Part shown: positions 7,446 to 54,585 of the stretch, piece after piece
Numbering within the stretch: the first letter of the stretch is position 1
Layout: every line of letters starts with the position of its first letter
Assembly: GCA_964247055.1 (NCBI GenBank)
Contig: OZ176053.1
Location: forward strand, 372,001 to 436,000
Length of the DNA: 64,000 bases
Origin: Paragordius varius
Lineage: Eukaryota; Animalia; Nematomorpha
Reading direction: 5' to 3'
The notes under the pieces: generated by a model
The model's input: the letters and a program-made list of their open reading frames with translations, nothing else
Told to the model about the DNA's origin: nothing
The model's database searches: none
Program-made: the position numbers and the translations under genes

Positions 7446-10139
7446 ATGAAAATGAACCAAAATATTAGCAATCCAAATTTTTTAATCACCCAGCCATTCC
7501 CTTTTTACAACAATACTTACTATACTAGCTCAAATTTTAATGGTAATGAAAACAGCCTGCTAAAATATTCGTTTGACCCGATTTATTCCCATAGCAAATT
7601 TTGTAATTTACCCCAAGATTCATTTTATTATTCTAACGGGTCTCTAGACTACTATCAAAATAAGAAAAATTTATTTTGCTTAAACGATCAGCTCTTCTCA
7701 GAGAATTCTAAAAACTATTCTTGCACTCAAGATGCGAACTCGTCGGTTATAACTGTAACCGCTTCTACTTATAAGCCAAATTTTGTCATTAAAACTAAAC
7801 CGCTAAATCTTGGCACATATCAAAATTTGCTAAATACCACCACGGCGGATATCAACTACAAAAGTTATTCCGCGCAAAATATGCTTTCTCCTATAAACTT
7901 TCAAAGAGATTATTTGTGCGAAAATGTAACTTATATTAATGCTTTAAAGGATTATCCAGAAAATTTAAAGAGTATAGATTTTAATGCAAAAACGGATAAT
8001 TTTTTACCATCTAATAATAGTAATTATCAGAATTATATAAATATTTATGCTTCAAACATTAAATTGGTTCAATACAATAATGCAAATATTGTTGACAATA
8101 ATAAATATCATGAAAATGTAAATGGTTACAAGCACTTGAAAAAGATACATACTAAGGCATTGGAAGTTCAACAACAATATAAATTTGTTGAAAATAAAAA
8201 TTTTCGCGGTGAAGTGTTGTCTAGGAAACCAATATTGGAAAAAGGTGTTTAATCAATAAAAGTCTCTAATCAATTATTGTTTGAATAATAATTTTAAAAA
8301 TATCCGATAATCGATAAAAAAGACATATAGATTTGACATTTAAATTATAACAAAATCATATTTTCAGTTAAGATATATTGGTAACGCAATCAATTGTATA
8401 TTTTACAATTGTAATTATAGGTAATTTATTTAGTAAAAATTAATTAAAAATTATGGGGTTGTTTTTTGGGAAAAAATATTTGTCCTTATATTTTTACGTT
8501 TGCCCGTATATCTGCATTTTTTACAGACGGACCGAAAGTAAAATTATAAAGAGAAATATTTTTATAAATTTTTTAATTCCAATTGTAAATTATATAATTG
8601 ATTGTTTTACCAATATACATATTTTCGTATTTTACAGTATAAAACAATGAGTTATGTATAAAAAAATGTAAGGTTTAAAAAAGTATGGGGTTGTTTTTTG
8701 GAAAAAAAATATTTGTCTGTATACATATTTTTACGTTTTGTCCGTATATTTTTAGTTTTTACTGTATCTACCGTTTATACATGTGACTGTTATATCCGAA
8801 TTAATGCAAATGATATTTTCTTAATTATATAATTTTTGGGCATTTTTCGCAAAAGTTATTAATTATTATATTTGTAATATCGTCAATGTTGTCATAAATT
8901 TAGTCGTCTTAGATATTCAACCTTACATTTTATTTTTTCAATAAAAAAATGATTTGAACAATATAAAAATTAGATTATAATGGTTGCTTAACACATAATT
9001 AATTGAAGTTTTCTATATTTTCTTTCGTAATGTACATAATGAACCCTTTATGATTTTCCCAACTTTTTTTGTTTTTCACGCCCCTTACACCAAATTGAAA
9101 ATTGAAAATTCTTGCGCAGCCCCCAAACTCAAAAATACAAGATAAAAATGTAAAAGATATTATATAATATTATAAAAATATCTATCATCCAATGAGATCC
9201 TTACATCTGCATTTTTTGAAGTGTATTTTTTTCATATCGGTGAAAATTTGATAATTTGCACCTGAAATCCTTCGATTTGTTGTAATTTTTATTTTTTAAT
9301 TGAATTCTACAATTTTCGCGCTCCCCTTTAGGTTTTGGTAATCACTGCTTTAAATGGCTATTATAAAACTTCATTTGAATCGATTTTAAAATATATTTCT
9401 CTGAAATAACTTTATAAACTCAATATTTTCCGCTAAAAAACATTAAATTTTTCCTATTTTTACTAAAAATTAACCGTTTAAATTTTTTTTGTAGATATTT
9501 ATCTAATAATTTACCACTTGGCTATAAAATAGGGGGAGAATGTGAAAATTTAGATATGATGACTAAACAACAAAGGCGAATGCGAACAACATTTACCAAT
9601 TCACAAATCCATGCATTAGAAAAGATTTTCCAGAAAACGCATTACCCCGACATTTACACGAGAGAGGACATGGCTGCCAAGATTGAATTAACTGAAGCAC
9701 GCATACAAGTTTTTACTAGGAAAATTTTTTAAAACTTTTATTTCCAAATCGTTTTTATGGAATCGAAAAGAATTTGTTAGCCCCTTTTCTACGAAATATT
9801 TTTATAAAATGTGAATGCAACAACCGAGAATCATTTAATTATACACGAAAAATGGATATCATACGGTTTGAAATAATATTTGCTTTTAAACTTTTGTGTT
9901 TTGTCCATATAATTTTAATTTTTTTATCATTATTTGGTCCAAAACCGTTTTTTTATCAAAAAATTATGTATAGCAAAATTTCGATTCTCGCTTGTAATCC
10001 TTAACTTTTCCCCTTAAACATCAATTTAAAATTATAAATATATATATATATATATATATTGGAATATTTTTAGGTATGGTTTCAAAATCGAAGAGCGAAA
10101 TACAGGAAAACCCGAAATAAGAACATTCAAAATTTTTAA
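7446..10139 (+). CDS. Phox2: PRD-class Q50 homeobox protein, Phox2-like, with long Asn/Tyr-rich N-terminus
   Basis: Exons 7446-8244, 9554-9708, 10074-10139 (phases 1, 0). Homeodomain [47 protein letters not shown]|[12 protein letters not shown] with the PRD-class intron between residues 46 and 47; [16 protein letters not shown] plus Q50 is Phox2-type. An acceptor at about 7420 leaves an upstream exon possible. Confidence 0.75.
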
Positions 10140-25700: not shown

Positions 25701-27303
25701 AATTCGAAAAGAGAAAATATTTTAAAACCTGTATTCCAAAGGATCATGGAAAATTGTTGAAATTGTTTTTTATTTAATGTTTTTAAAATGGCGATATCAA
25801 ATTTAGATAATTATATCTGTGACTGAAGTGATAAATCAAATTTTATTATAAAAGTTTTGGGTTTAGATATTTAAACCAATGGTACTCACCAAATTTTTTT
25901 AAAAAGCCCTAAAAATGTTTATTTTGCAAGGGCTGCGCATTATAAAAAACTGATAAAAATATTAAAGCTGTTTGACAAATTTACAGATATTTCAGGGTCA
26001 AAGGGCTTTTAGGGCCCCGGTTTTTACTGATTTATAAGATCATTAAATGGTGCCTAGACAAGTGTGATATTAATAAAAAGTTTTGATTTATCATATAAAT
26101 AAATGAAAAATATTTTTTATTTAAAGATCAGAATAGAAGGACCTTCAAATAAACCCATATATAAGAGTTTGGCAAATGATAAAAAAAAATTGAATATAAT
26201 GTTTAGACGATGAAAATTGTAAAAGTAAAATTTTATACCCGGTTGGCATAATTGTCTTGTAAATCCAATTAGTTTATGAATAAAAAAGTTTGCTTTTTTA
26301 CAGTCATGTATCCTTTTTTTATCAAAAAATTTTTTTTTCGTTAAATGTGTAAAAAAATTTGGTAAAGAATGGAAAAAAACAAGAGCTCTATGGTAATTGT
26401 TATACTTTTTTGATGAATATGATATTGTTAATACCATAGAGCAGTTTTTTCCATCTTTAACAAATATTTATACCCATTTAACGAAATAAAATAAATTTTT
26501 GATTAAATAAAGGATACATGACTGTATTTTAACACATACATTAGTATTTATTGTAAACTTTTAAAGCACTTTTTCGGTCGATCGCTGACGCCGAAAACCC
26601 TTTAAAATGAATGCTTGTGGAAATTATAGAGTTTAACTTTTTCAAAAATTTCCTTTCTGAAAATTTTAAAATAGGGGTGTCCAACACACACGGCTTCGTG
26701 AGCCACATTCGATAAATATATGGGCCTTAATTAATAATTAGATTTCAGGCATAAAAATGTCAATTAAAAAGTGCTATTTATTTAACCGATTTCTGTAAAT
26801 TTTTTGTCTAACAAATATAAAAATTTATTTGGGAAATATCAATTTTACTAATAATTTGTGAGAATATTATTTCTAATTGTAAAATTCGTAGCAATTTTGT
26901 TTCCCAAAATTTTCGCTCGCCGCCTAATATGAAGAACAGAGAAGTGCTGAATACGTTTTAAATCGATACTAAACCAATCGAAAAATAAAATTTTTATAAA
27001 TCATTGGAAAACAACTTAAAATATAAAGTAAAAATTTTATACATAATTGTTTATTTATTTAATATCTAATCTACAGTAAAGCGCACCACAGAGTTTATCG
27101 TGTATAGGTAATAAATAACAATATGTATGTATATAATTGCGTAAAAGTTCATATTATTTATACGTTTAATTTATTGCCGTTTATAATTCATTCTACTTTT
27201 GTTTTTCTCCCTTTCTTTTGTTTTTTGATATACATAATAATCCGTTTTCTAAAAATTCAAAATTTAATTTTTGACTTTTAAAAAATATTTTTTTTTTTCG
27301 AAT

Positions 27304-30300
27304 ATGAAAATCAATCAAATTCACAATTCGGATTTACATGTTTCCCAATTGTGTTTAGGGACATGGCAATTCAACGATAACACAGCTGGGACTTCATCGT
27401 ATACCTGGGATGCCCAAGATTATAAAGTTTTGCTTAATCAATTTAATTTACAATTTTGAAATTGACTATTTTTTTTTTGAAAAATATGTACTTGAAAAAT
27501 TTTATATTTTAAAAATATAGGTTTCTAAAGAAATTGTCGATGCCTCAATCGAAAGTGGAATCAATTTTTTTGATACCGCTGAGGTAACTGATATAGTTAT
27601 TTAATAATTTTTCTCTACTTAGCCTTTTATTTCATAATTAAATTGCTTTTTTAAAAAAAACTGTCTGAGGTATATCCTTGAAACTTAATTTTTTATAAAT
27701 TGTACTTCCTTGTTTTGCATTTTTTTCAAAAATAAAATATAATTAATAATTTTCTTTTGTTATGTATGACTTCCTCATCTATCTTTGAGCGAACTCACAC
27801 AAATTTTTACGCATGTCATATTTTATTTTACCTGTGGTGACAAAAAAGGTTTGATGGTATAAAAATGCAAAATATGTCTTTTCTAGAAAATTATTATAGG
27901 CTATGGATACCAAAGTTTACTTGTGGAAAAACGGCTGCAATTAATTACTTTTTTTTACAATTTTTTAAAATAGCTGGCGAAATATTTAAAAATATTAATG
28001 AAAATTAAAAAATAATATTTATCCTAATAATTATAGGCTTATAAGAATTCAGAATCTGTCTTGGGTCGCATTATAGAGGGCAGTTATAAATCCAGGCGCG
28101 GTGATTTGATCATTGCATCTAAGGTTGGCTTTAGTGCCGCTGTGGATAAACCGACTGCTTACACAGAAACTGATATGGAAGATTCTTTGAATACCACATT
28201 ACGAAGTTTGAAAACCGATTATCTCGATATATATCAGGTGATTAAAGATAAATGATTTAAATAGTAAAAATGATGCCAATGAAAGCAATGCTTTTGTTTT
28301 CAGTAATGTTTTAAACGATGTTTTTTAAATGCGAATAAACAGATGTATGTGGTTTTTTGAGCGATTCTTCGCTTATTTTTACTTACATTACACCCTTACA
28401 TAATTGAGTATTAAATAATGAAAAATGATAATTGCTTGCTTGCGCAGCAAAATCTGATATCTAACTATTGTTTAAACTAAAAAATGTGAAGGTTAATATT
28501 TTATAATCGTTTTTAGAAGTAGAATATTTAAATACCAAAATTTTTTAATCCAATGTTTTAGATCCATTGGCCAGCTGTAATGAAAGATGTTGAAGGCACT
28601 GTCAAAGCCCTTAAGCGTTTCCAAAGTTTAGGGAAGATTCGATATTATGGAGTCTCTAATTTTGGGCCAAAAACTATGGAAGCATTCTATGCTGCTGGTG
28701 GACAGCCCATTTCCAACCAAGTTGGATCCATGACAATTTTTATTAATTCAATATTTCTTCTCGTTGCTTTAATATAATTTTTGCGTTATTTCTTTCTGAA
28801 TTTTATTGTTCGTTTTTTAATCTTTTAGTTACCATACAGTTTGTTGTGGCGAGCCATTGAATATGATATTATTCCAGAGTGTGCAAAACATAATTTGGAT
28901 ATCCTAGCATATTCTCCGTTGGCCCAGGGCTTGCTTTCAGGAAAGTATGAAACGGGTTCACAATTTCCCGAAGGCAGGCGCCGGTCACGGCTATTTGATT
29001 GCAAAAGGTATAAGCAGACGAATTTTATAAATATAGTATAAATACTTTTATATTATATTTATACTTAATTTTTGTAAAATTTACCAATTATTATTTGGAA
29101 TGGTAAAATTTTTTTTATATTGATTAATATTTTATTTAAAAAAATTCGTGAAAAAAAAACAAAATTAATATAAAGTTATATTTTATTTTTCAATAACAGC
29201 ACCAAACTAGCGACCCACACTGAGGCAGGATGTGAGCAACAAATATTTTCAGCTTTAAATCAAATTAAACATCTACTAAATCAACTTAACGCTAGTCAAA
29301 CCTGCCATACTCATCAACCCACGGCAGATAATGTAAATGACAGCTGTTGTCATGGTGATAAACACACTTGTCATGTAATTTCAATATTAAAATATTTGAG
29401 ATTATATATATATTTAACGTTAAATATATTATATTTAAAAGGGTCAGGACACGGATTGTAAACAGCCACTTAGTATGGTTAGTGTTTCGCTCGATTGGAT
29501 TTTGAAAAATCCTCAAATAGCTTCCGTTATTGTGGGTGCCTCATCGCCTCTACAAATCAAAAATTTAGTGAGCGGTCTAAATCCGGAAGCATTAACTCAG
29601 GTAAACTTATGCATTATAAACCTATTTTTGAGTTTTTAATATAGCATAACTTCTTTTTGTGAATAACACGGGACCGTTCAATAAAATTTACAAAGTTGTT
29701 TAATTTTAAAAAACCAATATCTATTAGCAATCTGCAAAAAAATATCGGCTTTAAAAGCTGTAATTACTAATCTACATATTTATAAAAATGGAAAATGCTG
29801 GCTTTGTGACCTGGTACCGGAAAACCGGTAGACCCATTCAAATCCAAACATCGAAAAAATATAATTATTAATGAATGCCCGACAATAGCTTCGCCCTTTT
29901 TTAAAGGCCCCCAGTTCGGCCCACCCCGTGTAGAACACGGTTTTTTTGTTGAAAACAAAAGTCCACAAAAATCGTGTCATGAGACAATTTTCCGGAGAAC
30001 GTGTTGGACCATTCAATTTCAAATATGATTTTTGTTTACTTATTTTCGATTGCGCCGAACACATTCGTCTCGCTTTTTTAAATTAGGCCCTTACCCGCTC
30101 CCACCGTAATATGCCATTTTTTTCAAAAAAACAAAATCCACAAAAATAATCTTTTGAATCTATGTATTTTCCCCCAAGTAAACAATAAAGGAATGCACCG
30201 TTTTAAAATTCCTATGAGATCATAGCTATTAAATAATGTTTCGAAATAATCCACATATATGGATCATTTTATTGATCGCTTTTTTCAAATCACCCCCCTC

Positions 30301-31727: not shown

Positions 31728-34700
31728 TTAACAAGTTTGAAAAAATAGACGGAAATCATGTTTAGTTCCCTTCAAAGTTATTTCCGGCCAGCTGATGTAC
31801 TGAATAAAATGGTTGGGCAAAAAATAAGTTTTAGTTTTGTTCCTATGTTCACTATATACTTCATGTACTCTGACACCCGTGGATAGCTGTTTGTATTCAA
31901 CCTAAAATTAATTAAATGTTAAAATATACCATAAAAAGGCATCACTATACAATTTAAAAGTTTTTCAAAAAAAACGATAGTTACAGTAAAATATAATACA
32001 GACAAAACGTTAAAACCTAACGACAAATATTTTTTTAATGTTAGCTGTACCTTTAAATCGATTTTTTAATATTACCTATTAAATTAAACTTCAAGTTTTA
32101 AATACAGATGTGAATTGGTAATACAATCATTTATATATTTTGGAATATAAATAAAATAGTTTATCTCGAAAATACACAGGTTTTAAAAGTAGGGTTGTCT
32201 TTCAAAAAATATTTGACATGTTTTTAACTGTCTGTATAATTTCAATGTTCACCTTAATCGTATTAAAATATTTTGTATCCTTATCGGATATCAATATAGT
32301 AAATAATATTTTAAAAACTAAAAGCCGCTTTTAAAAATAAAGTATGCATATATTTAGTAATAAAAATTTAAATAATAAATTTAAAATTAATTTACTTGAG
32401 CGTCAAAATTAAGGGGAAGTGGACAAGAAATAATGAAAGAATTTTTTTCTGCTTCATGATGCAAAAAACATATTTGAGGTCTTGGCACAGGGTTTGGAAA
32501 TAGCTCCCATTCATACGTCAAATTAACTACCAGCTTTTGATTAAAAATAAAAAAAAACTAAATTTGCATTATTAAAAAACATGTTAGTTTATCTAAAAAT
32601 GTGCCATATTTACTTATATTATTACACTTTTTTTAGTTAAAAATTTACGGTATTAATAACACAATCGTTCATTTTAATTAAAAACTTATTATATGCCCTT
32701 TTTTTAAAAAAATATATTAATCAATTAAAAGTACATGTTTTTTCACTAAAAATAAGCTAGTACATTGACCTTTTTTACGTAGTTTTTTCCGCACTTTGCA
32801 TTTTATAACAATACTTGACAAAATATCACACTTTAATGTTATTGTAAAAAAAATTACATAAAAATAGGTTTAACTGTATATATCTCAAAAATATTTAAAA
32901 AACCCTAATTAAATTAACTTACATCACTTATAATCCGAAGGATGGAACCAGGTCTAATACCTACGATCTCATCTATACGATACAGCGTATCCACTGGGAT
33001 ATGATATGCATTATTTTGTTCGGGATCTCGGTTATATATTTGACGGGCCATAATAGGCGTGTACAAAATATTGAGGAGCCTTCCCACATGTACTGTCTTG
33101 GTACTGAGAAAAATATTATATTTACAGTAAAAAGTGAAATTATACGGACAAAAAACGTAAAAATATAAAGACAAATATTTTTTTCTAAAAGACAACCATA
33201 CTTTTTTAATCTTGATTTTTTTCAACATAACTCATTGTTTATAATAGCAAAAAATCAAATAGGGATATATATTACAAACACACTCAATTCTATAATTTAG
33301 AATCGTAACTAAATAGCATATAGAGGTAAAATTAAGGTTTTAAAAAATATGGTTGTCTTTTAGATAAAAACATTTGTCTTTATATTTTTTGTTTTGTCCG
33401 TATAATTTTATAATTTTTACTGTAAATTTGCATATGTGGTGTCATAGAGTAGTGTGCGACTGAATTTTACAATAATAATTTTAACTCAAATTTATACAAA
33501 AAGCTACAAAGCTAAATTTTAGATTTATGTTGACATGTATGTTAGAATGAAAATTAAAATTATGCGGATTAAACGTTAAAAACTAAAAGACGTATTTTTT
33601 TCAAACAACAACCATATTTTTTAAACCTTGATTTTTCTATAAACTATTTATTACATTTGTAAAATATATAATTGAGTGTGTTAACATCTCTATTTCCGTA
33701 TTACAACCCTAAACGAAGGATTTTATAATATAATAAGGTTTAAAAAGCATGGTAATCTTTTTTAAAAGTATATTTGTGTCTTAATTTTTACGCTTTGTCT
33801 GGATAAAATATTAATTTTTATGAGATTAGTAAGTCATCCTATCTGATAAAATATAAAATTACTTAAATTATATTATACACGATTTTGTGGATCAGTTATA
33901 TGAACTCAATTTTTAAAAGGGTATAGCCCTAAATTATATAAAAAGATGGTTTCTATATTTATGGCCATAATTTGAAAGAACCTATACTATAACTATAATA
34001 TACGGACAAAACCTAAAAATATAAAGACAAATATTTTTTTCTAAAAGGCAACCATACTTTTTAAATCTTACTTTTTCCTGCAAAGTATGATAAAAAAAAC
34101 GTAAATTGTTAACTCAATCATTAATATACTTTACGATTGTAATTACATGATTTTATAACAGAAATTAAGGCTTAAAAAAGTATGGTTGTTTTTTGAAAAA
34201 AAAGTTTTTATATTTTTACGTTTTGTCCGTATTTTTCATTGTACTTTTTGAATAAGGCATAGAACTGCTTAATTACAAAATTAGTGTTTAATTAAAAGGC
34301 TTTAATTTATTAAATCGTATATTTACATCAACTTTATTTCTATCTTCTAACCAATCTTAAAAACTAATTGCAATTTTAAAAACCACAAAAAGCGTGATAA
34401 TTTTTTTCATTTTTTAACTTTTACGAAAAGTATTAAAGAGTAAACCTATATCAATAATGTAATTTAATTGATCATTTACAGTTCAAATTCACCCTCGAAC
34501 AATTCAAATTCAATCTCGAACTATTTTTATTCACCCTTGAACAATTTAAATTCATCTTAAAAATAAATTATGTGTTTTCGAACTAATATAAATCATTATT
34601 AATATAAAATATATCTCTATGGCATAGTGTATAATTTTTCAGTATTATTTTGATAAAAAAAATTTTTGTTGTTAATATATACAGGTATTTTTTAATCTTA

Positions 34701-35549
34701 AAAACATATATTTTATTTGACAATGATGAATTGTTCAAGGGTGAATTTGAATTGTTCAAGGGTGAATTTGAATTGTTCAAGTGTGAATATGAATTGTAAA
34801 TGGTATATATATTAAAACTTTTGCATTCAAAGTTAATTTTAATTTTACTATAATTTGATTTGACTTACAAGCGATCCAGATATGTAAGCTCGGGGAAAAC
34901 GAAAGCAGTTCCAATACGTTTATTCCTCTGAATTTGATCACATAAATAGTTTTTTCCTAAAATATTTTTACAACAATAGAGTAAGTAATATAGAAAAGGC
35001 CATAAAACTAAAAGCATTTTTTTAAAGTTAACCTAATATTTAAATATTTAATTTTTTTCATATACAATATATGATTAGGGGTTAGATATTTGTATTATGT
35101 AATTATACAACTTTAATCATATGGGCTATAAAAAATTCTAAAATATCAAAATTATTTAAAATTTTTAACTAAAAAATTTTAGCCTATAAATTTACATATA
35201 GCTAATTTTAATATATTACAGTTAAATTTATATAGAAAAAAAGTAAATACATAAAGGACAAATATATTTTTCAAAAGAACGCTGTACTCTATTTCACATT
35301 TAGTGGTTTAAAAAGTATGGTTTTTTTGAAAATTTTTTTATGTCGGTATAATTTTATTTGTACAGTAATATTATCATTTTTACCTTTTGTAATATTCAAA
35401 AGATCATTTTCCAGGGGATTATCAGCTGTTTCTGGCAGGCCGCCCAAATCAAAAGGGTGAGTTTCTGTATCTTTGATTCCACAGAGTATGAAGTTAACTA
35501 AGGCAAAAGCGATAATAATTATCAAAAGTGTAAAAATATTGGTCTTCAT
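31728..35549 (-). CDS. Secreted protein of unknown family, paralog B
   Basis: Exons 35549-35384, 34956-34869, 33103-32923, 32533-32396, 31901-31728 (phases 1,2,0,0), open to stop. Signal-peptide-like N-terminus; FVFPELTYL, NILYTPI, AYHIPVDTLYRI, LRIISD, RPQICF..CPLP, WPEITLKGTKHDFRLFFQTC*. Confidence 0.88.
33125..33422. mobile_element. Intact M1 MITE inside intron 2 of paralog B
   Basis: TA|CAGTAAAAAGTGAAATTATACGGAC ... GTCCGTATAAT..TTTTACTG|TA; one end lies 21 nt from the exon-3 acceptor. Confidence 0.9.
34473..34803. mobile_element. M2 MITE in intron 2 of paralog B
   Basis: CATTTACAGTTCAAATTCACCCTCGAACAATTC ... GAATTGTAAATGG|TA with 21-bp repeats at both ends. Confidence 0.85.
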
Positions 35550-36917
35550 TCAAGGCAAATCAATTTTTCCAGATAAATTTTGGAATATATTGTAAATTGA
35601 ATTTATATTATTTTTAAAAACTAATAAAATTAAAAATCGGAATCTAACATATACGGGTCAGAATTTTAAGATCAATAAAATTGAAATATCGTGTATATAA
35701 GGCGAACAGGGTGGGTAAATATAATTTATATACAAATTTATATACTACTGTGTGTCAACAAATATAGGCGCCATTATACCTTATAAATGTAAATGTATGT
35801 GGTGTTTATTTGTTTTATTGTTTCTTAAAATTTTGGGTTGAAATTGTGATAATTACAGTTGTAATAATTTTGTTAGAAGCCATTATAACCTAAACTCAAA
35901 TAATGGGAAAATTTAAAGTTAAAAATTTAAGGCAGACTCAGTTACTTTAATTTTTAATATTGGTAAATATATTTTATGGGGATACCCCAAAGATTTAAAG
36001 ATATTCTTTTCTAGTGAGAGCTAACTTTTTAACAATTAATGTCTAACATAACTATAATTGGGAACATATCTTATTTCAATTTTTAGGTTATAACAATATT
36101 CCTTATAATGAAAATCTGAGTCTATAGAGGTTTTCCACCGCTACATCGACTTAAAGGCTCAATGAATTTTATTTTGTGCTGTTTACCATAATTGGTACAA
36201 CGTTGGAATAAAAAACCAACTTTAGCGCCCTTATTCTCAATAATAAAATTTATTTTAATTCTTCTCTAAAAGGTATATACAATATTTGAATTTTGATTAT
36301 ATTATTTCCATTATAAACCATTTTGATTTCATTATAACTAGCGAACTTATATGAGAGACATAAATATTTTTAAGATTCGTTTTTGTTGCACAGTAAAAGC
36401 TATAGTCTAAAAAATATCTTTTTTTTCTTAAGGGTTATTGGAATGTTCTAGTACAGAGGTCCAAAATGGCTTCATGGGCCGCATTTTCAACTTAAGATAT
36501 CTGGCGGGCGGTATTTCAAAAATAAAGTCTAAAAACCGATAATGCTTTGTGAAATAAATATTTTATTAAATATCTAATGGTTTTGAAAATTTAATGCTTT
36601 ACCGAACAATCAATCATAGTGTAGGAGAAATTGAAGCAATAGATACATATCTGATTACATGCTGACACATTTGAAAGGAAATTTGAAATTATTTTATAGA
36701 ATTTTTAACAAAGAAGATTGATTATTTTTGCAAATTTTAGAATTTATAATTGGTATTTTTTCTTGGAGCGGGCAGTACAGAATATCACGGAGAGCCTCAT
36801 GAAAGATATATTATTAGATGACTGAAAATTTCTTGGAGAAACCATACAGAATTTATAATATTCACAATATTTATTCATCATATTTTCCCAAAATATATAT
36901 GACATAAAAATATAATA

Positions 36918-39722
36918 TTAACAAGTTTGAAAATAGAGTCGAAAATCGTGATTCGTTCCCTGTATAACAGCATTGGGCCAATTTATATGGTAAAGGAAAT
37001 AATTGTTTAATTCATATTTCAGAGATTTGGATTCAGTTCCTTCCAATATAGTTTCCGTAACCAGGACTCCGGTTGGCTTTTGAACATAATGTACCTATAT
37101 TTTCAAACAGCAATAAAAATTTTTAAATGGATACAATAATTTTTGTACTAAATTATTTGAAAATTATACAGTAAGATTTATTATGTCAAAAGGCAAAAAC
37201 TCAAAAAAGACATCCATACTTTTTCAAACCTTAAATTTTTGCATTTAACACATCGTTCAGGGTTGCAAAATAACGAATCAAAACTTAATTTGTTAGAGAT
37301 TTTATATAGATAATGTAGGCAAGTTAAAAAGATATGATTATATCTTCAAAATATTTATCTTTTAGTTACGTTTTGTCCGTATATTTTAAAATTTTACCGT
37401 ATAATGTAAAATTATTCCAAATTTTTAAAAATAATTATTAATTTCTTATGATTTATATATAAATATACCTTAGCACCATAGATTTGAGGTAGGGGGCATT
37501 TAATGTAAAGTTTTTCATTTGCATGGAGCAAAAAACATATTTGGGGTCGGGTCGGTTGATTTTTAGTATCAAACACATTAACAGGCATATCGGGCTTCTC
37601 ATAACCCAAAACTGTTAAATTGTATTCTAGATTAACTTGCATCTATATATATATTATGTATATATATAGATATATATATATATATATTATGTATATAATA
37701 AAAATTGAAATTATACAGACGCTACGTAAAAAAGAAAAGACAAATATTTTTTTGTAAAGTACAACCATACTTTTTTGAACTTGATTTTTTAAATATAACT
37801 CTCATTGTTATAAACTGCAAAGTATGAAATAGAGAAGTAAATTGGTATACAATCTCAATCAATTATATATTTGACAGTTTTAATTAAATAGTTTATATAG
37901 GAAAAATTAAAGTATAGTTGTTGTATTTTTATAAAAAAATATATTTGCCTTTATATTTTTACATTTTGCCTGTATAACTTTAATATTTACTGAATAAATT
38001 TGTTAAGCAATTTTAATAAATTAACTAATGGTTAAAGCCAATTTTTTAAATATTTTTAAATTTTATTTAATTTCGACACTGTCAAAATCGATATCCATTT
38101 ACCTTTCAAATTCACCCTTGAACAATTCAAATTCACTGTTGAGCAACTCAAATTTACGTTATGCAATTCAAACTCACCGTTAAGCAATTCAAATTCACCC
38201 TAAATAAATTACGTATTTAAGATTAAAAATTAGCTATATTTTTTATATTTTTAAAAATAGTATTTTGTTAATTAAAATAATACAGAAAATAATAAACTAA
38301 GCGATAAACATCCATTTTGTATAAATGATTAATTATATTAGCCCAAAAACTCATAATTTAAAAACACATAATTTATTTTAGGATGAATTTGAATTGTTCA
38401 AAGGTGAATTTGAATTGTTCGAGTGTGAATTCGATTTTTTAAGGGTAAATTTGAATTTTGTAAAGGGTATATTACATCACTAATGACTCTAAGGACAGAT
38501 GTTTCCCGCACATAAATTATAGCATTCATGCGATAAACTGTATCTGGTGGGATGTAATAAGCGCCCCCTTTTTCTGCAAAAATTTCTTTGGCAGTGATTG
38601 GAGCATACAATATATTTTTTCGTCGACTTAAAAACACTTTCCTTGGGCTATAAAAATAAATGATAAAACTTAATAAAAATAAAAAATTAGAAAATTTAAA
38701 ATATTTCAATTGATAGTTTTCGAAAAGGCATTAATATTTTATTAAAAATTTAAATACGGACAAAACATAAAAACTAAGACAAATATTTTTTTTCATAAAA
38801 CAACCATACTTTTTTAAACCTTAATTTTTCTTATATAATTAATTAAATTACAATTGCAAAATATATAATTTATTATATCACCAATTTACCTTTCGATTTC
38901 ATGCTTTGCAATATAAAAACAATGTGTTACATTTAAAAAATCAAGGTTAAATATAAAACAGTAAACCGGCCTATTCAAATAGAATATTGTTGTCTTTATA
39001 TTTTTACGGTTGTCCATATAATTTCAATTTTAATGCATATTAAAAATGAATGATGAAGTATTTACAAATTTTCCAGGTAAGCCAATTCGGGAAATACGTA
39101 AGGTGTCTCAACAAATCCTTTACCGGTTACATAAGAGCAAGTATATTCTTGACCTTAATAGGGTGGAAAAAAATTGTAAAGGTAAAACCTGATTTTTATT
39201 TTTTTTAAAGCGAAATAAAAATGAAAGAATTTTTTTTACAAAAAGACAGCCCCACATTTTTTCAAATAATTTCTAACAAGTCATAACCTAAAAGATCAAA
39301 ATATGGATAATGTCTTTTTTAAAATATATTTGTTTTTGTGTTTTCACATATTGTTCTTCTGTATAATTTTAATTTTTACTGCAAAATTTGGTTTATAAAA
39401 GTTTTTTTTTGGTAAAAAACGGAAAAAGATAAGGTTACATCTATATACCTTTAGGAATTTTTTTGAGTTCCCTAATAATTGATTGCGGAACTGGACGTTT
39501 AGTTTCAGGCTTCGGAATGTCTACAGGTCGACCAATTGGAGATTGTCCCCTTGAAATATCTGAATTATTTATTTCTCTGATCAAAGCATCTCCATCTATC
39601 AACTCAGCAGGACTTGCTAAGGCATTCTGGAATATTCCGAATAAACCAAAAATGACAAAAACAGCTATATAGATTGTGGTTAAAAAAGTTAAATGGTGTT
39701 TGGGGAATAATAAAAACAACAT
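36918..39722 (-). CDS. Secreted protein of unknown family, paralog A
   Basis: Exons 39722-39449, 39153-39066, 38647-38476, 37642-37469, 37094-36918 (phases 1,2,0,0), open to stop. Hydrophobic N-terminus; YVFPELAYL, NILYAPI, AYYIPPDTVYRM, LRVISD, RPQICF..CPLP, WPNAVIQGTNHDFRLYFQTC*. Confidence 0.88.
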
Positions 39723-41303
39723 TTTTCAATTTAAATGGGCTTATATTAATTAGAGCGGGGACTTTTGAATCTTAATATAACTATCATTTATATAATACCA
39801 TACGATATCAACCTCACTACCCGCCTTATGTAAATATAATAAAACAAAACTAATAACCCGTTGTTTATTACACAAAAAATGTACACATATTATTTAATAA
39901 GGATTTTAAACATTTCAATACATTTCACGATCAATTATAAGATTAAATATGATTTAATAATATTAGTTTATTCCGTATTTTATATTAAAACATTGTTTCA
40001 TGCTTTTAAATTTTTAGTGGCTAAAAAAGATGGTTATTATAATATTCACCCGGCTAACTTTTAGGTTAATAACAAAAATTCATAAAAAAATTTCGCAAAT
40101 TTTTTTAATTTTATCAAAAATATACCAAATATTAAACCAAATTATATCATTTATCGCGTTTTTGTGTTAATTTTAATTTTTGTATTGGAATTTTAGATTA
40201 TAGTGTAATATATGTATGCATATATGTTTGCGAGTAAAGGGTATACTCTTAGAGTCAATATTAGCTTTTAAGATTAACATATACATTTCAATGTATCTCT
40301 CCATATACATATCTATTATATATAGTGAGGGTTAAAATAATCTCCTCTGTTCTTAAACGGACAAAACTGGTCCCAAGGACAACTCTGCCCTTTATATATG
40401 TATGGATGTATGTATTAGTTGTATGTATTAGTAAAAAAGTATATTTGAAAGTTGTTTTAAGGTTATTCTTATTTATCATTTGCAAAACACAACACAACAC
40501 AATCTATTTATAACTTATCAGTAATCTGTAATTAATTTAAAATATGTATAATCAAATGGACTATAGATTTCAGTCGACAGCTGATAAACTCAAATAAAAT
40601 CTAAATCCAGTTTTAGCTTTAAATAAAATTGTTTCATCACAGAAATAATGACCTATTCAAATTCCAATGGACAATCACTGTTTCTAAGGTAACACTCAGG
40701 TATGATTTATATCGAAACAATTTTATAGGTCATATCTTGCGATATGGCCCACATACACAAAAATTGAATTTGCGTTGTTTTTTGTTTGCTTATGGTGACG
40801 AAAAGTCTGATGAAATTTTTATCTTTATTTTATACATATTATAGTATAATACACCGACCACTTGAAAAGGGTAGGTTTTTTCGAGTTTGCTTTTTTGGAT
40901 GTGACCCCTTTTTTCTCGTGTAAAAATATCATGATGACTTGCAAAAATGTCCAATTTTGGGGGTGTTTTTATATTTTCGAGATTCGTTGGTTGACTTCAC
41001 ATTTATTTCTTTTCTGTTAGTATAATTAAACGAGAAATGAGTTATAAATAAATATATTATACATTTCAAATATCTGATTGAGTATGACCTAAAAATGTTA
41101 TTATAATACTAAAGCTATCTAGGTCACTTGTTTGAAGAAGGGTAATTACATTACTTTGCAGTTTAAGTTGCTATATCTTTAATTTTGTCGCGTTTAATAT
41201 CTTAATATATTTTGTTGATTAACGATCTACACATTTTTTTGTTTTATCATTTTCATCCATAGCTCAACATATACTATTCACACGTTTTAAAACCAAGTTA
41301 GTT

Positions 41304-43606
41304 ATGAATCAAAACGCTCTCCGAATATCTATTTTTACCAACCAAATCACAACATTACTCCTTATATACGCTTTCCTATTGACCACAACGGTAAACTCCC
41401 AAGCTATAAATATTGCTTCCTCAACAGAAAATAAAAATAAACCTAATGCTTCCTCTGTTATTTTAAATCCCGTAAATCCCGGCGCTATACCCAGAAAACA
41501 TTTTAACGAAACTGATCATTACAATAAAAATGGGAACAAAAGTTCAGGCGTAGAAAAAATGGAGAAGGATGTCAGGAAATCGATAGAACGCCGAAAAGCT
41601 AATCGAGGGAAACGTGGTATGTATTTTAAAATAAGAGTGCTTAGAAAGCAATTCTTTAAAAACTTGTACATAATCCTTTTTTCAAGTCCACCCTTTAACA
41701 TTTCAAGTTGTTCCCCTTGAATAATTGTATTTTGCGAGGAAATTGTCTGTTTAAGCGGTTTATGTTAAAAATGTACTGTACATTACATTTAATAAGCAGA
41801 GTACAGGATAATCGTTTGGTATTCGATTTAAAACGCAAATAATATAAAAAAAATATGACGCAAGTAAAATTATTGTAATTTTTTTTTACTAGTTATAAAT
41901 TAATTAACAATCATTACTTTGGTATTAAACAAAAATTGTTCAAATCAGCCTTTTAAAATATTAATAACAACAATTTTCCCCGTAAATGTATCAATCCATT
42001 TTTTATATTAACATATATGGTTATAGTTAACGGAGTCAATCCAAAGATTTGTGCTATTGTAACGAAAAATGATTCATACGCTTCTGATCAAATCTTTCCC
42101 CGTATAGATTACATAACGGATTATTTGTAAGTCTCTACTAGTTATAATTCAGAATTTACCCATAATTTTTAATATGTATCTAGTTTATTTGAATACTGTA
42201 AAAATGAAATTATACAGACAAAATATGCAAACATAGAAACACATGTTTTTTAAATGATCACTATACCTTTTTGAGCTTTGATTTTTAAATTATAACTCAT
42301 TGTTTTAAACTGCAAAGTTCCAATTAATTATATATTTTATGATTGTAATTAAATAGTATAAATAGTAAAAGGGTTGAAAAAGGATGATTGTCGTTGTAAA
42401 AAAATATTTGTTTTTTATTTTTTACGTTTTGTCCGCATAATTTCAATTTACTGTATAAATTAAATTTTTATTTTCATAAAATAACGATAAATTTACTGAG
42501 AAATATTGATTTTATAGTTCAGAAACTTTGATGATGGCCCGTGTAGGAAAGATCATTTATATACAAAACAATTTTGAAGGTCAGTTTCTGAGATCTGTGG
42601 GAAAACCTGGGATTTATGAGTTAAGCTCCAATTCTATGCACATTCTCAATATGATTTTCAGACTTGTCCCCAAAGCTCCATACATTATTGAATCAAATGT
42701 AAATTTTGATATTTTAGTCCAATTCTACAATAATTTAACACTTGACAAATAACATTAATTTCATATTTTTTTGATAAAGACTTTACTGTAAAAGTCGAAA
42801 ATTTAAATTTATATTTTTATAAGATACGCATTTCAGCTTAATTTTTAATAAATTTCATAATATATATAATGCGTAATTCTCTCAATTTTGTCAAACCAAT
42901 TATATTTTATTTTTAATAAATAGGTTGTAATCAAAGCCACAAACACATTACCCAAACATCACTACAAATTTTGTATGATTGAATTGGGGACGAATCATGC
43001 CATGGAACGCTGTGCCATGCCCAAAAAACCCAATACTACAGTATAAATCCCTCCCTTTTACAAATAAGCTTTAATTAGTTTTTTATCATTTAGAATTAGT
43101 TTTTTTTATCATTTAATATAAGTTGTTTTACAGTAAAAATAAATAGATATACGGACAAAACATAAAAATATAAAAAATATTATTTTCCAAGTCCGCTGTA
43201 CTGATTTTTCAAACAACTTATTATGTAAAGTTGCAAAGAAATATATATTGGTGAAACATCAATTATGTATTTTAATTAAATAGTTTATGTGGGAAAAATT
43301 AAGGTTTGAATAGTGTAATTGTCTTTTAAAAAATATTTTCTTTTTAATTTTAACATACTGTCAGTATAAATTTAATTTTTACTGTAAGTTATAAAAATTA
43401 AAATTTGCTAATATAAGTTTATATTCAAATATTTTTTGCAGAGTATATATACGCAAAATCCAACCGCCATTAAAGCCGAACAAGATGATCAATATAAGCA
43501 AAAAATTTCGTATTTCAATCACCATTTTGCCTCCCTTCTGCATTGGCCTAACGTTAAAGTAACAGGTGATCGGCACAGACTTTTTATTAAAATTGCAACG
43601 TGTTAA
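41304..43606 (+). CDS. Secreted protein of unknown family, paralog C (most divergent; possible furin site)
   Basis: Exons 41304-41616, 42027-42126, 42518-42698, 42924-43040, 43442-43606 (phases 1,2,0,0), open to stop. Signal-peptide-like segment, RGKR, ICAIVT..IFPRIDY, FCMIE..RCAMP, WPNVKVTGDRHRLFIKIATC*. Confidence 0.85.
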
Positions 43607-49900: not shown

Positions 49901-52900
49901 TTGTAGCACAATTTGAACCACATCCTTCATCATACGGATTCTCAACAGACTATAATAAAATATCACCGCGTAATTTTATATTTAAGTCGAAATTTTAATG
50001 ACAGTTGAATTCGTAATATAATGATATTCATATCGTTTATAATTTCTGTTTATAATTATCTTTCTATTAGTTTTTATTTAATTTTCAGTTATCATTATAT
50101 TACGGATTTTACAACTGTTATTACAAAACATGATCAATCCGTCATTTTAAATGTGTTATATTTAAAAACAAAATATTCATTTTAAATGTGTTATATTTAA
50201 AAACAAAATATTCATTTATAAATTCAAAAATTTATTTTTCGAAACGACGTGACAGATTATACATTTTTGTTTAATTAACGTATGTCATTCCGTTTATATA
50301 TGGGAAGAACGGTTTTATACATACACCCAAAAAAAGTTTTAAAAAATAATTATAAAAGAATTTTTATTTCAAAATATATATATATATATATATATATATT
50401 TGAAGATTTTGTATAATTAATAATAATTCTTATGCAAGTATATATGGTGTAAAAGGTATGCTATTTATTTACAAAAACAAAAGTCAATATGTACTGTTTT
50501 TTATATAAATTTATAATGAAATTACATGAATAAGTTCAAACATAGAAAGGGGATATTATTTAAAGCAAGTCAAAAAGTCGCAATATTGATTTTTCTGCAC
50601 AAAATATAAAACTAGGAAGGCTTTTAAATAAAGAGTATAAAGGGCCCGATTCCATATTTACAATTCCGCGTATAGGCTTTATAGAAACAATATAAGGATT
50701 TCAAATTATAAACATTTTAAATATACTCACTCTATCTAAAATAATTTTTGTTTTACAAATTTTAGTGCCATAAAACATGGAAAAACCCCACTGAAAATAA
50801 AATCCCTTAAAAAGAAGCCAATACATATCGACAATTTTCTATAAATTTTATGATTATGATTTGAAAAAAACCGAAAACCTTAAATTTTCCCGTCACGTGT
50901 TCATTAGTGGTTCGCCCACGGGCTATAAGAACGGCATGGAACCCGCATAAACCCGAAATAGGAAGTATAAGGACCAGGGCTAGCGGGCACAGCGTTAGAG
51001 TCGTAATGCCAGGGGGATTGACTAAATGCTTGAAATTTTGAATAACGTACAACAGGCTGAATATAAGCACGGTCAAAGCATGGATCATAAGCAGGACGAG
51101 GAATATGAAAAAGTATCTGTGTGTGCAATATATGCGAAAAAAATGGGAAATTAATGCAAAATATTAGTTAGTTTTTTATATGTTTAGCCACAAAGCCTTC
51201 AATTATACCATTTACAATTCAATTTCACCCTTAAACATTTCAAATTCACGCTTGAGCAATTCAAATTCACCCTTGAACAATTCAAATTCACCCTCGAACA
51301 ATTCAAATTCACCTTCAAATAAAATATATGTTTTTTAAGTTAAAAATTACCTCTATTTTATATATTTTTAAAAAATAAAAATTTTGTTTTAAATTAAAAT
51401 AATACTAAAAAAAATAATAAACTATACCATAAACATATATTTATATTAATAATGAGTTATATAAGTTGGAAACACACAATTTATTTTTAGGGTGAATTTG
51501 AATTGTTCAAGGGTGAATTTGAACTGTAAATGGTACATTAAAAATTCTCTAGAGTGATCGTTATGCTTGTTAACTTTACAAGTGGTTAAATTCGCAAAAT
51601 AAAATTGGGATTAATAAATTTTAATTTTTCAAAAGTAAAAAGAAAACCCATTTGTTGGTACAAGCGCGCAGATAATTTATCAAATAAGGCAAACAATATT
51701 CGGTTATATAATTGAAGCTTGTTCTGAAAAAAAAAACAACAAAATATTCAAAAAATCCCCTTAATACTTGTATGTCATTAATTCTATTCACAAATTTTTT
51801 ATATTGTGTTCTTTCCAAAAACAATTTTAGTATCTATCTAAATTAATATAGTACAATAAAAATTAAAATTATACGGATAATTAAACATATAGAGAAAAAT
51901 AATTTTTTAAAAGACCGCTGTAATTTGTTAAACTTGATTTTTTAATTTAATTATAATTCATTGTTTTCTGCAAAGTATGAAATAAAAAGTAAATTGTTAA
52001 TATATTGAATCACATATTTTTGTAATTAAATAATTATATATAAAACAAATTAAGGTTTAAAAAAGTATGGTTGTTTTTTGGAAAAATAAAATATTTGTCT
52101 TTATCTTATTTGTACAACTTCAATTTTAACTATACATCTCAAGCTTAATCGTTTCAAAAAAACTACCGATAATTCCCTCGCCCAATGCAATTATGCAGCC
52201 ATGGGCAATGATGATCAAACGTTTCAATACATGCATTACAAACGCTGCAATGAGAACACCGAGGTGGCCGATAAAATTTACACGTGTCACACCATTTAAG
52301 TTGAACGGTTAGGCCCTTGATATGAATGGCTTGGTACAAGGGTGCCCGATAATTTGGTTCAGAAGCTGTGCGATACAACTCTTCATCCGTGCCAGCTCGT
52401 GGAAATATGCCAGGATCTAAAACGATGCAGGCCAGGAAATTGACAAGTAGTGCCGTAAACAGAATGGCATGTAGGTATAGTGTGATGCGTTGAGGTGTGA
52501 AATACATTTGACGGACAGCATACCAATAAGGGGCACTTAACCAAGGGATTTGCCAATCTTCATTATTAAAGGATAGTAGTGTCTGAGATGATGACATATG
52601 AAATGATGTAGGGGTGGTGGGCATAGGCCCCTTGATGCCATGTTGCATATCAGCTGATTTTAGATTTTTTGTTAGCGTTGAGGTGTAGGGATTATATTTT
52701 GGGTAATACCATAACCATTGACCTGGCCCGTAAGCATAAGCCAGGGCCGTACCCAACAAAAGAGTCCAAGCCATGTACAAGGGCAAAATATCGCCCATAC
52801 ATTTATTACATTGTCTTTTGTATGTTTTCCAACTTTTTTTATTATGATCTGTCGTAGTATCTGAAGCAATGATAACATTTACATCATCAACATCGTGTCC

Positions 52901-53345
52901 TGTATTTCTCAATTTATTAGAAAGACCATTATTAGCCTTAATTCGTGTGTATTTATGATTTGGTTTAGTGGTAGAAATAAATTTTTTAGTCGCCAAGTTG
53001 GCAGATAATGTTTTTTGTGGGGAGGATCCTGAAGCCATCGAGCGTTGCTTGTTAGCAACGCTGTAAAGGTAAGAGGCATTTGGCCCATACATATTGGTAT
53101 TATTGTCCATTGATTTAAAGTTGGGATTTGTGTTTGCAGCGGTATTTGTTGAATGCTGAGAATAGTAAGGGTAATTATATGAAATCTTCAATAAATTACA
53201 TATTTTATAGATATAGAACATGATTTAACAGTTTTTATAAATGCAAAAAATGTTTCGAAATCACCTGTTTACTCCCCAGCATTTGATTATTGAGTGGCTG
53301 TACAGTGGATTCATCTTGAATGACGTTTTTATCAACGTTATACAT
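46965..53345 (-). CDS. DHHC palmitoyltransferase, ZDHHC5/8-like; C-terminal tail model uncertain
   Basis: Exons (minus) 53345-53265, 53185-52167, 51116-50879, 49949-49772, 49030-48839, 48142-47947, 47635-47547, 47179-~46965. [85 protein letters not shown]. In-frame TAA at 48054-48056 in exon 6. Confidence 0.88.
49502..49670. mobile_element. Second copy of the ~168-bp MITE with foldback-type termini
   Basis: TA|CAGTATGCATTTAATAG ... CATTAAAATGCTGCATACTG|TA; interior similar to 44132-44298. Confidence 0.85.
51208..51533. mobile_element. M2 MITE (CCATTTACA termini, TA flanks, subterminal 21-bp tandem repeats); representative copy
   Basis: TA|CCATTTACAATTC, then (TTGAACAATTCAAATTCACCC)n ... GGGTGAATTTGAACTGTAAATGG|TA. 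Other copies at about 690-1077, 1665, 14075/19115, 20079, 34473, 38098, 58496, 63783. Superfamily not assignable. Confidence 0.85.
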
Positions 53346-53605: not shown

Positions 53606-54196
53606 TCAACACAATTCGCCTTCATGTCTAAGGTATTCACCAATATCGGCTTGATGGAAGCAGACAATATCGAGTGGATTGTTTGAAGCACGTGACTCCT
53701 GAGTTGATTTTGCTGCAATACCAAACCCAAGGGGGATTTCAAAGTTAAGGTTTGATGGTTGAGAAAAGATAAAGACACCGCCATATTTGGGAATATTTTC
53801 CGACATTTTAGCAACGGAAGATTTAAGCACATGATTCCCATACAAGAAACCTTGACCAGATTGGTTCTGGTGACTGGAGGAGGGCTTAACCCAAATTTTG
53901 TATTTAGCCAAGGGGGCTAACACCGAGAGTGCAGTTATTGCCAGTTTAAACGTTTTGAAAGATCTATCAAATTTTCCAAGCCGTGTGCCAGCGGAAACAA
54001 TTTTATTACGTGGGAGTCCGGATGCATATTTAAGCACATCTTTACGCACGTAATAAACACGGTTTTCACGGTGCAAACGAAAGAAAAAGTGTTCACCGTC
54101 AGGTCGTTCTATTAAGAGTCTAACATTTTCAGGGGAAACATATTTAGAAAGCTTGGTGAGAAGCAATTTAGTCTCGTATTCGGTAAGTGGTCTCAT
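53606..54196 (-). CDS. NIP7: 60S ribosome biogenesis factor NIP7 (PUA domain), intronless
   Basis: Single ORF MRPLTEYETK..KLSKY, FRLHRENRVYYV, GTRLGKF, ITALSVLAPLAKYKIWVKP, FLYGNHVLKS, PLGFGIAAKST, VCFHQADIGEYLRHE. Confidence 0.96.
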   Translation of the reverse strand: MRPLTEYETKLLLTKLSKYVSPENVRLLIERPDGEHFFFRLHRENRVYYVRKDVLKYASGLPRNKIVSAGTRLGKFDRSFKTFKLAITALSVLAPLAKYKIWVKPSSSHQNQSGQGFLYGNHVLKSSVAKMSENIPKYGGVFIFSQPSNLNFEIPLGFGIAAKSTQESRASNNPLDIVCFHQADIGEYLRHEGELC

Positions 54197-54585
54197 GATG
54201 GTTTTAAAAATCAAAATGTCGACTGGTTAAATATTGTTTAGCTTCAATTATTTCCTAAAATTTAACATATATGCAAAACTTCTTTAAGTTCTTTTTGCGC
54301 TTCTAGGCAATTGATAAATGTAAAAACTTGATAGAGTAGTATGGTTAATATAAATAGTGCAATACCCAAAATAACAAGGGTTGGAATCAACTAAAATATA
54401 ATGCTAGAATACTTGTAAATAAAATCTGGTAGATTTGCTCGAAACAAATAGTGATATGGTATATGATGTAAGTATTAATGAGGCTACCGTCAAAATATTA
54501 TAAAATCTCTTCATTTAATGCGGAACAGAGTCATATTACGGTGGTCTAAAAAGAAGAAATCATATGAGTCAAAAAATTATTTTAA

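Follow-up and report, generated by a model that had tools for sequence, protein, structure and literature searches.

Small disulfide-bonded modules are known from the surface-coat mucins of Toxocara, where the SXC/ShK unit is about 36-42 amino acids long and has six cysteines; the same unit occurs in small secreted proteins. For hairworms, full-text literature searches found no description of mucins or of the module family considered here. Nematomorpha are among the animal phyla least studied molecularly, and how they live in and manipulate their hosts is largely unknown at the level of mechanism. Here we describe three genes, A, B, and C, in a 64,000-nucleotide stretch of the Paragordius varius genome (GenBank assembly GCA_964247055.1, contig OZ176053.1, positions 372,001 to 436,000, forward strand), which is referred to as the window. 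All three are very likely genuine horsehair-worm genes, each encoding a stand-alone single copy of a four-cysteine module that is also the repeat unit of giant hairworm mucins. Because the domain is already visible in database entries from another hairworm, Gordionus, this claim is narrower than that of a new family in this cluster: what is new is the existence of single-module stand-alone proteins, their own old clade with a Gordionus orthologue, and the four-exon cassette that encodes the module.

Structure of the three genes

Both strands of the window were read, and the three genes, which had been noted in a preliminary description, were rebuilt from the sequence. The GC (guanine plus cytosine) content is 22-35%, ~24% over most of the length, and long open reading frames (ORFs) are scarce; the window looks like intron-rich animal DNA, and Rfam and tRNA scans of it gave no match. 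As originally described, the genes are intact, each has five exons, and the intron phases are 1,2,0,0 in all three; 12 of 12 introns are GT-AG, and the joined frames contain no internal stop. The predicted proteins are of 294 (A), 248 (B), and 291 (C) amino acids. Exons 2 to 5 measure 88-100, 172-181, 117-174, and 165-177 nucleotides, respectively, across the three genes, and the introns 295-1,765 nucleotides. A and C are divergent, with start codons 1.58 kb apart, and B lies on the same strand as A, 1.37 kb downstream. From base composition, a random frame at 24% GC is estimated to meet a stop about every 11 codons; the exons of A, B, and C, open over 39-60 codons, are therefore far from chance. 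On sequence grounds, the three are confirmed as intact, genuine protein-coding genes.

Each protein begins with a hydrophobic segment (Kyte-Doolittle mean of 2.5-3.3 over the best 12 residues), and the residues at the likely -3/-1 positions are small. By this heuristic (hydrophobicity plus the -3/-1 rule) the starts do look signal-peptide-like, as reported earlier, and the hydrophobic N-termini suggest that the products are probably secreted. Apart from one cysteine inside the signal-like segment of B, each protein contains exactly four: Cys1 in exon 2, a Cys2/Cys3 pair in exon 4 (C-x12-C in A and C, C-x14-C in B), and Cys4, which is the last residue, in a TC-stop context. The aligned cysteines, including the terminal one, and the shared FP (exon 2) and WP..G..H (exon 5) motifs were all where the preliminary description had placed them. 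It had also called A and B similar and C distant, and over the domain A and B are indeed 47% identical, whereas C is only 21-22% identical to either.

Six-frame translation of the window yields 1,969 stop-free segments, and all of them were scored with a profile hidden Markov model (HMM) built from Gordionus modules alone. The top ten segments were exons of A, B, and C, in the order B5, A5, A4, A3, B2, B3, C5, C2, A2, and B4, and they are collinear on the HMM. C is placed in the family because it has two significant exons, collinearity, aligned cysteines, and identical intron phases. The exons are given below in window coordinates; exons 2 to 5 are module exons a to d, the expectation values (E) and positions are those of the Gordionus-only HMM, and P0001 is a Gordionus protein discussed in the next section.

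39449..39722 (-): A exon 1; ATG, hydrophobic signal-like segment (…NALA/SP), variable linker; ends in phase 1
39066..39153 (-): A exon 2 (module exon a); Cys1, FPELAYLEN; phase 1 in, 2 out; E 0.011, positions 5-31
38476..38647 (-): A exon 3 (module exon b); phase 2 in, 0 out; E 2.6e-4, positions 28-106
37469..37642 (-): A exon 4 (module exon c); Cys2-x12-Cys3; E 2e-5, positions 102-148
36918..37094 (-): A exon 5 (module exon d); WP..G..HDF…QTC, then stop at once; E 4.5e-7
35384..35549 (-): B exon 1; ATG, signal-like segment, short linker; ends in phase 1
34869..34956 (-): B exon 2 (module exon a); Cys1, FPELTYLDR; E 1.9e-3
32923..33103 (-): B exon 3 (module exon b); E 2e-3
32396..32533 (-): B exon 4 (module exon c); Cys2-x14-Cys3; E 0.43, at the correct positions 109-137; 37% identical to P0001
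31728..31901 (-): B exon 5 (module exon d); ends …FQTC, then stop; E 1.1e-8
41304..41616 (+): C exon 1; ATG, signal-like segment (…TVNS/Q), Asn/Lys-rich linker ending RGKR; ends in phase 1
42027..42126 (+): C exon 2 (module exon a); Cys1, IFPRIDY; E 8e-3, positions 6-32
42518..42698 (+): C exon 3 (module exon b); assigned from its collinearity, length, and intron phase; alone not significant against the Gordionus HMM
42924..43040 (+): C exon 4 (module exon c); Cys2-x12-Cys3; E 3.7, at the correct positions 108-136
43442..43606 (+): C exon 5 (module exon d); HWPNVKVTGDRH…ATC, then stop; E 6.3e-3

The least certain of the junctions is the donor of C exon 1, because exon 1 is not conserved. Exon 4 of C is 41% identical to exon 4 of a paralogue, D, found elsewhere in the genome, and exon 5 of C is matched by D at E 2e-10. 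Exon 5 of A is 44% identical to the C-terminus of P0001, and an IPK-x-x-EY motif spanning the exon 1/2 junction of A is common to A and P0001. The stop regions of A and B are 81% identical over 53 nucleotides (repeat D9). Exon 4 of A has ~14 residues (…LTVLGYEKPDMPVN…) beyond those of B exon 4 or P0001; part of this extra segment could be an unrecognised in-frame tiny intron, the genome having micro-introns.

Relatives in protein databases

Searches for relatives of A, B, and C took one exon at a time, and their exons were joined only for checks of frame, identity, tree, and local HMM; wherever a whole protein was needed, P0001 was used as a stand-in. For the last exon, a profile of six sequences was run against 1.84 billion representative proteins and gave five matches at E<=0.001, of which three are convincing. 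All three are from Gordionus sp. m RMFG-2023:

P0001, CAK9299981.1: 235 amino acids; last-exon profile E 5.5e-12
P0004, XP_065322587.1: annotated 'mucin-22-like', 1,090 amino acids; last-exon profile E 3.5e-4
P0005: multi-module protein, 491 amino acids; last-exon profile E 8e-4

The other two, a cystatin-repeat protein (P0002) and a low-complexity 87-mer (P0003), were dropped as spurious. Word-indexed searches of 5.8 billion proteins, using P0001 and the family profile, returned Gordionus proteins alone (P0006, P0007, and P0008). As judged from these databases, the module family has been found so far only in hairworms, in keeping with the lineage-specific distribution that had been proposed. 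The genome of Gordionus has a GC content of 26.93% (10.1101/2023.06.26.546503), similar to that of the window.

P0001 and a closely related RefSeq entry, P0006 (uncharacterized protein LOC135927679 isoform X2), resemble A, B, and C in having one module, equal length, and the same four cysteines, and they end at the same terminal cysteine. They differ in coming from another hairworm species and in being uncharacterised entries without name, domain, or function, and their N-terminal exon is annotated in two incompatible ways. Over the domain, P0001 has 48-49% identity to A and B. It also runs unbroken across all four exon junctions of these two genes (…AYLENFP…, …VISDM…, …YGAQ/KL/V.Y.Q…), and the splice models of A and B have no better support available than this continuity.

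The module as a mucin repeat unit

Other Gordionus proteins (P0004, P0005, P0007, and P0008) contain two to several copies of the module with Ser/Thr-rich stretches between them; in P0007, a signal-like segment is followed directly by two modules, and the protein ends …RTC. The consensus common to A, B, C, and the mucin modules is ~175-200 amino acids long and reads C1 … C2-x12-14-C3 … G-x2-H-x7-8-C4, where C1 to C4 are the four cysteines; some modules carry additional cysteines, in pairs. A local jackhmmer search from P0001 alone did not reach the mucin modules, which the alignment-seeded HMM did. P0007 as a single-protein query had no match in the Paragordius genome, so exon profiles were needed for the genome search.

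With the last-exon profile, at least 29 module copies were found in this genome, including copies on the contigs designated C8 and C2. At least 17 last-exon matches fall in an array on contig C2 at 13.04-13.10 Mb, in which ~2.9 kb of (X-T-T-P-S-G)n comes after every module. The module is thus flanked by TTPSG-type repeats here and by Ser/Thr-rich linkers in Gordionus, a mucin-type setting in both that favours the extracellular role suggested in the preliminary description. The signal-like start of P0007, directly before a module, and the pairing of the additional cysteines point the same way. That description had, however, missed that the family is larger than the cluster and that the domain is the repeat unit of giant mucins.

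The mucin module at C2:13,060,239-13,060,913 has exons of 82/175/123/157 nucleotides with phases 1, 2, 0, 0, 1 and introns of 29, 81, and 28 nucleotides. In alignment, the exon boundaries and phases of the mucin module match those of exons 2 to 5 of A, B, and C. Four exons make up the module cassette, with phase 1 at the entry, 2,0,0 inside, and, in mucins, phase 1 again at the exit. Phase 1 in and phase 1 out is the classic mark of extracellular modules that exon shuffling has spread. In the three stand-alone genes, the cassette comes after a phase-1 signal exon, and a stop codon takes the place of the outgoing splice site. Having one module with a stop right after Cys4, they lack the tandem reiteration between Thr/Ser/Pro-rich linkers; they have the mucin-module domain yet are not mucins. 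The very short introns of the mucin module, both GT…AG, are at C2:13,060,321-13,060,349 (29 nucleotides) and 13,060,729-13,060,756 (28 nucleotides).

Three further loci on contig C8, the paralogues D and E and a broken duplicate of D (D'), have long introns and a stop soon after Cys4, and no neighbouring module was found in the DNA examined around them. Paralogue D and an adjoining leucine-rich-repeat gene occupy C8:5.266-5.276 Mb, and an inverted duplicate of the pair is at C8:5.133-5.143 Mb, ~130 kb away. In this second copy, the leucine-rich-repeat frame is split over two frames, and the last exon of D' is truncated and contains stops; the copy looks degenerate.

Age and constraint

In a maximum-likelihood tree of 11 modules from both species, A, B, C, and P0001 form one clade (support 98/98) apart from the mucin modules of either species. 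Its topology is (C,(B,(A,P0001))), with support of 90/86 for A plus P0001. Taken at face value, A would be the orthologue of the Gordionus P0001 gene, and the split between A and B appears to predate that of the two worm lineages. The split of C, again at face value, would also be older than the two lineages, although its position is less sure because of its long branch.

Between A and B, the proportion of nonsynonymous differences (pN) is 0.36, and that of synonymous differences (pS) 0.80; synonymous sites are saturated, and hence only the statement that pN is less than pS can be made. The nonsynonymous-to-synonymous rate ratio (dN/dS) called for in the preliminary description could therefore not be obtained, but the pattern fits purifying selection. 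An apparently ancient duplication with pN below pS sits well with a family that had been called old yet maintained.

Known families and fold

Nine exons of A, B, and C were searched against Pfam at E<=10, and P0001, P0004, and P0005 at E<=1; nothing rose above noise in either search. Sequence and profile searches of the PDB found no relative. AlphaFold2 models of P0001 had a predicted local distance difference test score (pLDDT) of 41 with six Gordionus rows and of 55 when exon fragments of A and B were added; exon fragments of C, D, E, and F and the mucin modules were left out of the input, as MAFFT scattered them. At this low confidence, the models have a short helical start followed mostly by strands. 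A Foldseek search with the low-confidence P0001 model found no match in the PDB (template-modelling score, TM, < 0.2), and an exhaustive VIA-align scan with the same model gave nothing meaningful. The domain, which was not recognised in the preliminary description, has consequently no Pfam family and no PDB sequence relative, and the profile searches, structure prediction, and Foldseek matched no well-known family; of the proposed beta-rich fold, the strands do appear in the models, but those models are of low confidence. Overall, the earlier reading of an old, lineage-specific, probably secreted, and unrecognised family is supported.

Introns and neighbouring genes

The introns of A, B, and C are full of short interspersed and foldback repeats. 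One interspersed element, with the core …ACGGACAAAACGTAAAAATATAAAGACAAATATTTTTTT…AACCATACTTTTT…, occurs in both orientations at window positions 31993-34255, 37199-37992, 38760-38874, 42209-42478, and 43126-43384; it resembles a miniature inverted-repeat transposable element (MITE) or a short interspersed nuclear element (SINE), and copies are also present in the introns of paralogue D on contig C8. Foldbacks of a 21-nucleotide tandem unit (GAATTTGAATTGTTCAAGGGT and its complement) are at 34452-34829 (B intron 2) and 38089-38471 (A intron 3); one foldback has 95-nucleotide arms, 78% complementary, with 182 nucleotides between them.

Judged by eye from their ORF translations, the genes on either side of the cluster appear to be ordinary housekeeping genes:

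27271-29041 (+): aldo-keto-reductase-like gene, upstream of B
50807-53221 (-): DHHC palmitoyltransferase, downstream of C
53606-54214 (-): NIP7 homologue, downstream of C

The longest ORF in the window besides that of the DHHC gene is at 7446-8252 (+); its 268-residue translation is Asn/Tyr/Ser-rich and of no obvious family.

Discussion

In the reading that we consider very likely, each of A, B, and C would consist of a signal-peptide exon with a variable linker, ending in phase 1, followed by one four-exon cassette whose frame stops right after the last cysteine, to give a stand-alone, single-module product that is presumably secreted. A long-range disulfide between Cys1 and Cys4 may join the ends of the module, and Cys2 and Cys3 may close a local loop; a Cys1-Cys4 staple, by bringing the ends together, would suit a bead-on-a-string unit. 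The module would act outside the cell as a binding or matrix unit. Possible partners are the mucin coat or an extracellular matrix built from the same module, or a molecule that the mucin modules also bind. Among the functional options, we prefer an interaction with a mucin coat or matrix of the same module, but only tentatively, as a possibility that is less likely than not. For C alone, cleavage might occur at the candidate RGKR site just before the module, a prediction that depends on an exon-1 donor without homology support.

Several points weigh against this reading. The splicing of A, B, and C rests on homology and splice signals. Exons 3 and 4 of C are singly not significant against the Gordionus HMM, and C sits on a long branch of the tree. 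The hydrophobic stretch of A is long (~21 residues) and could be a signal anchor instead. The disulfide pairing is a guess, and 'beta-rich' is a weak description of the fold given the low confidence of the models.

That the three loci are merely decaying leftovers of mucin genes, or chance open frames, with no functional product, is scarcely credible and largely refuted. The case for genes is of course one made from sequence, and D' on contig C8, with stops in its last exon, demonstrates that broken copies of the family exist. However, the 15 exons of the three genes are all free of stops and have canonical splice sites, where a random frame would close about every 11 codons, each gene has its own ATG and hydrophobic leader, a full-length Gordionus orthologue has the same ends, pN is well below pS, and the stand-alone clade is distinct from the mucin modules. 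The most interesting alternative to a part in, or partnership with, the mucin coat is a host-directed role, in which the parasitic juvenile would secrete A, B, and C as effectors into the haemocoel of its insect host, to evade immunity or manipulate behaviour. Hairworms live as parasites in the haemocoel and manipulate the host, and a part in this has been proposed for proteins made by the parasite (10.1101/2024.06.11.598342). Restriction to one taxon, apparent secretion, diversification, and genomic clustering all characterise the family. Many parasite effector families follow this pattern. Nevertheless, the Gordionus orthologue of A is 49% identical to it, and pN falls well short of pS, which speaks for conservation, not for the rapid change of some effectors; the module is also mainly a structural mucin repeat. 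We regard this alternative as unlikely. A more specific form is decidedly unlikely: soluble factors with a fold absent from solved structures would have evolved from the mucin module, and the worm would release them into its insect host, where they would bind host molecules to evade immunity or manipulate behaviour. If true, it would give Nematomorpha a first candidate family of phylum-specific effectors.

Two further alternatives concern what kind of protein the module is. In the one, A, B, and C are processed prohormones or growth-factor-type ligands, with an exon-1 propeptide cut by a furin-type convertase so that the module is released. Many secreted ligands have a signal, a variable pro-region, and a conserved cysteine-containing C-terminal domain, and in C the sequence RRKANRGKR directly precedes the module. 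But a dibasic convertase site is missing from the linker/module boundary of A, B, and P0001, the signal-like segment of P0007 abuts the module, and the site in C hangs on the unconserved exon-1 donor. Cystine-knot growth factors (NGF/Spaetzle, TGF-beta, and IL-17) have six cysteines (four in IL-17), a C-x-C or C-x-G-x-C arrangement, and ~90-120 amino acids; A, B, and C have four cysteines in ~185 amino acids with no C-x-C, and no growth-factor match in Pfam. A ligand of this kind is accordingly quite improbable. In the other alternative, the module is a very divergent C1q/TNF jelly roll, and the stand-alone proteins are trimeric ligands or pattern-recognition proteins. A language-model feature search (ESM Atlas) with P0001 put C1q-domain clusters first, at scores of 0.80-0.81, and G-A-Y-x-I-P-x-D-x-x-Y-R looks by eye like a C1q/TNF strand motif, which is a lead only. 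Shuffled proteins reach 0.8 in this search one third of the time, and the P0007 mucin-type module gave no usable feature match; the scores are at noise level, and the lead was not reproduced. The Pfam searches described above, at E<=1 for the three proteins and E<=10 for the exons, contained no C1q/TNF match, and no C1q or TNF chain was among the fold-search matches listed, although the model searched was poor. PF00386 had no match in this genome, control genomes being equally silent. The module, at ~185 amino acids, is also longer than C1q/TNF domains (~130-150). This alternative is very improbable.

If our preferred reading of A, B, and C as stand-alone mucin modules is correct, then the only folded unit of the giant hairworm mucins, which has the phases expected of an exon-shuffled unit (in and out in phase 1), is predicted to occur also as old, conserved, small secreted proteins. 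A ~190-residue protein that can be expressed would make the structure, disulfides, and partners of the module far more tractable than a giant mucin would. Gene annotation also gains a profile with which to find a family that pipelines, both ORF-based and standard, miss or leave unnamed.

Comparison with known systems

The C1q/TNF jelly roll (PF00386, PF00229) resembles the three proteins in having a secreted or type II layout with a C-terminal, probably beta-rich domain; it is shorter, with another cysteine pattern, and no HMM or fold match connects the two. The giant-mucin modules of hairworms themselves have the same domain, significant profile similarity, and the same cassette with its internal phases. 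They differ in being reiterated between Thr/Ser/Pro repeats, in leaving the cassette in phase 1 for the next exon, and in having introns of 28-81 nucleotides; their identity to A, B, and C is ~20%, and they fall outside the stand-alone clade. The SXC/ShK modules of Toxocara have no sequence relationship to the hairworm module, which is ~180 amino acids long with four cysteines and has no Pfam match. The resemblance is one of analogy: in both worms, a disulfide-bonded unit (predicted to be so in the hairworm) is used in parasite mucins and also alone, in small secreted proteins.

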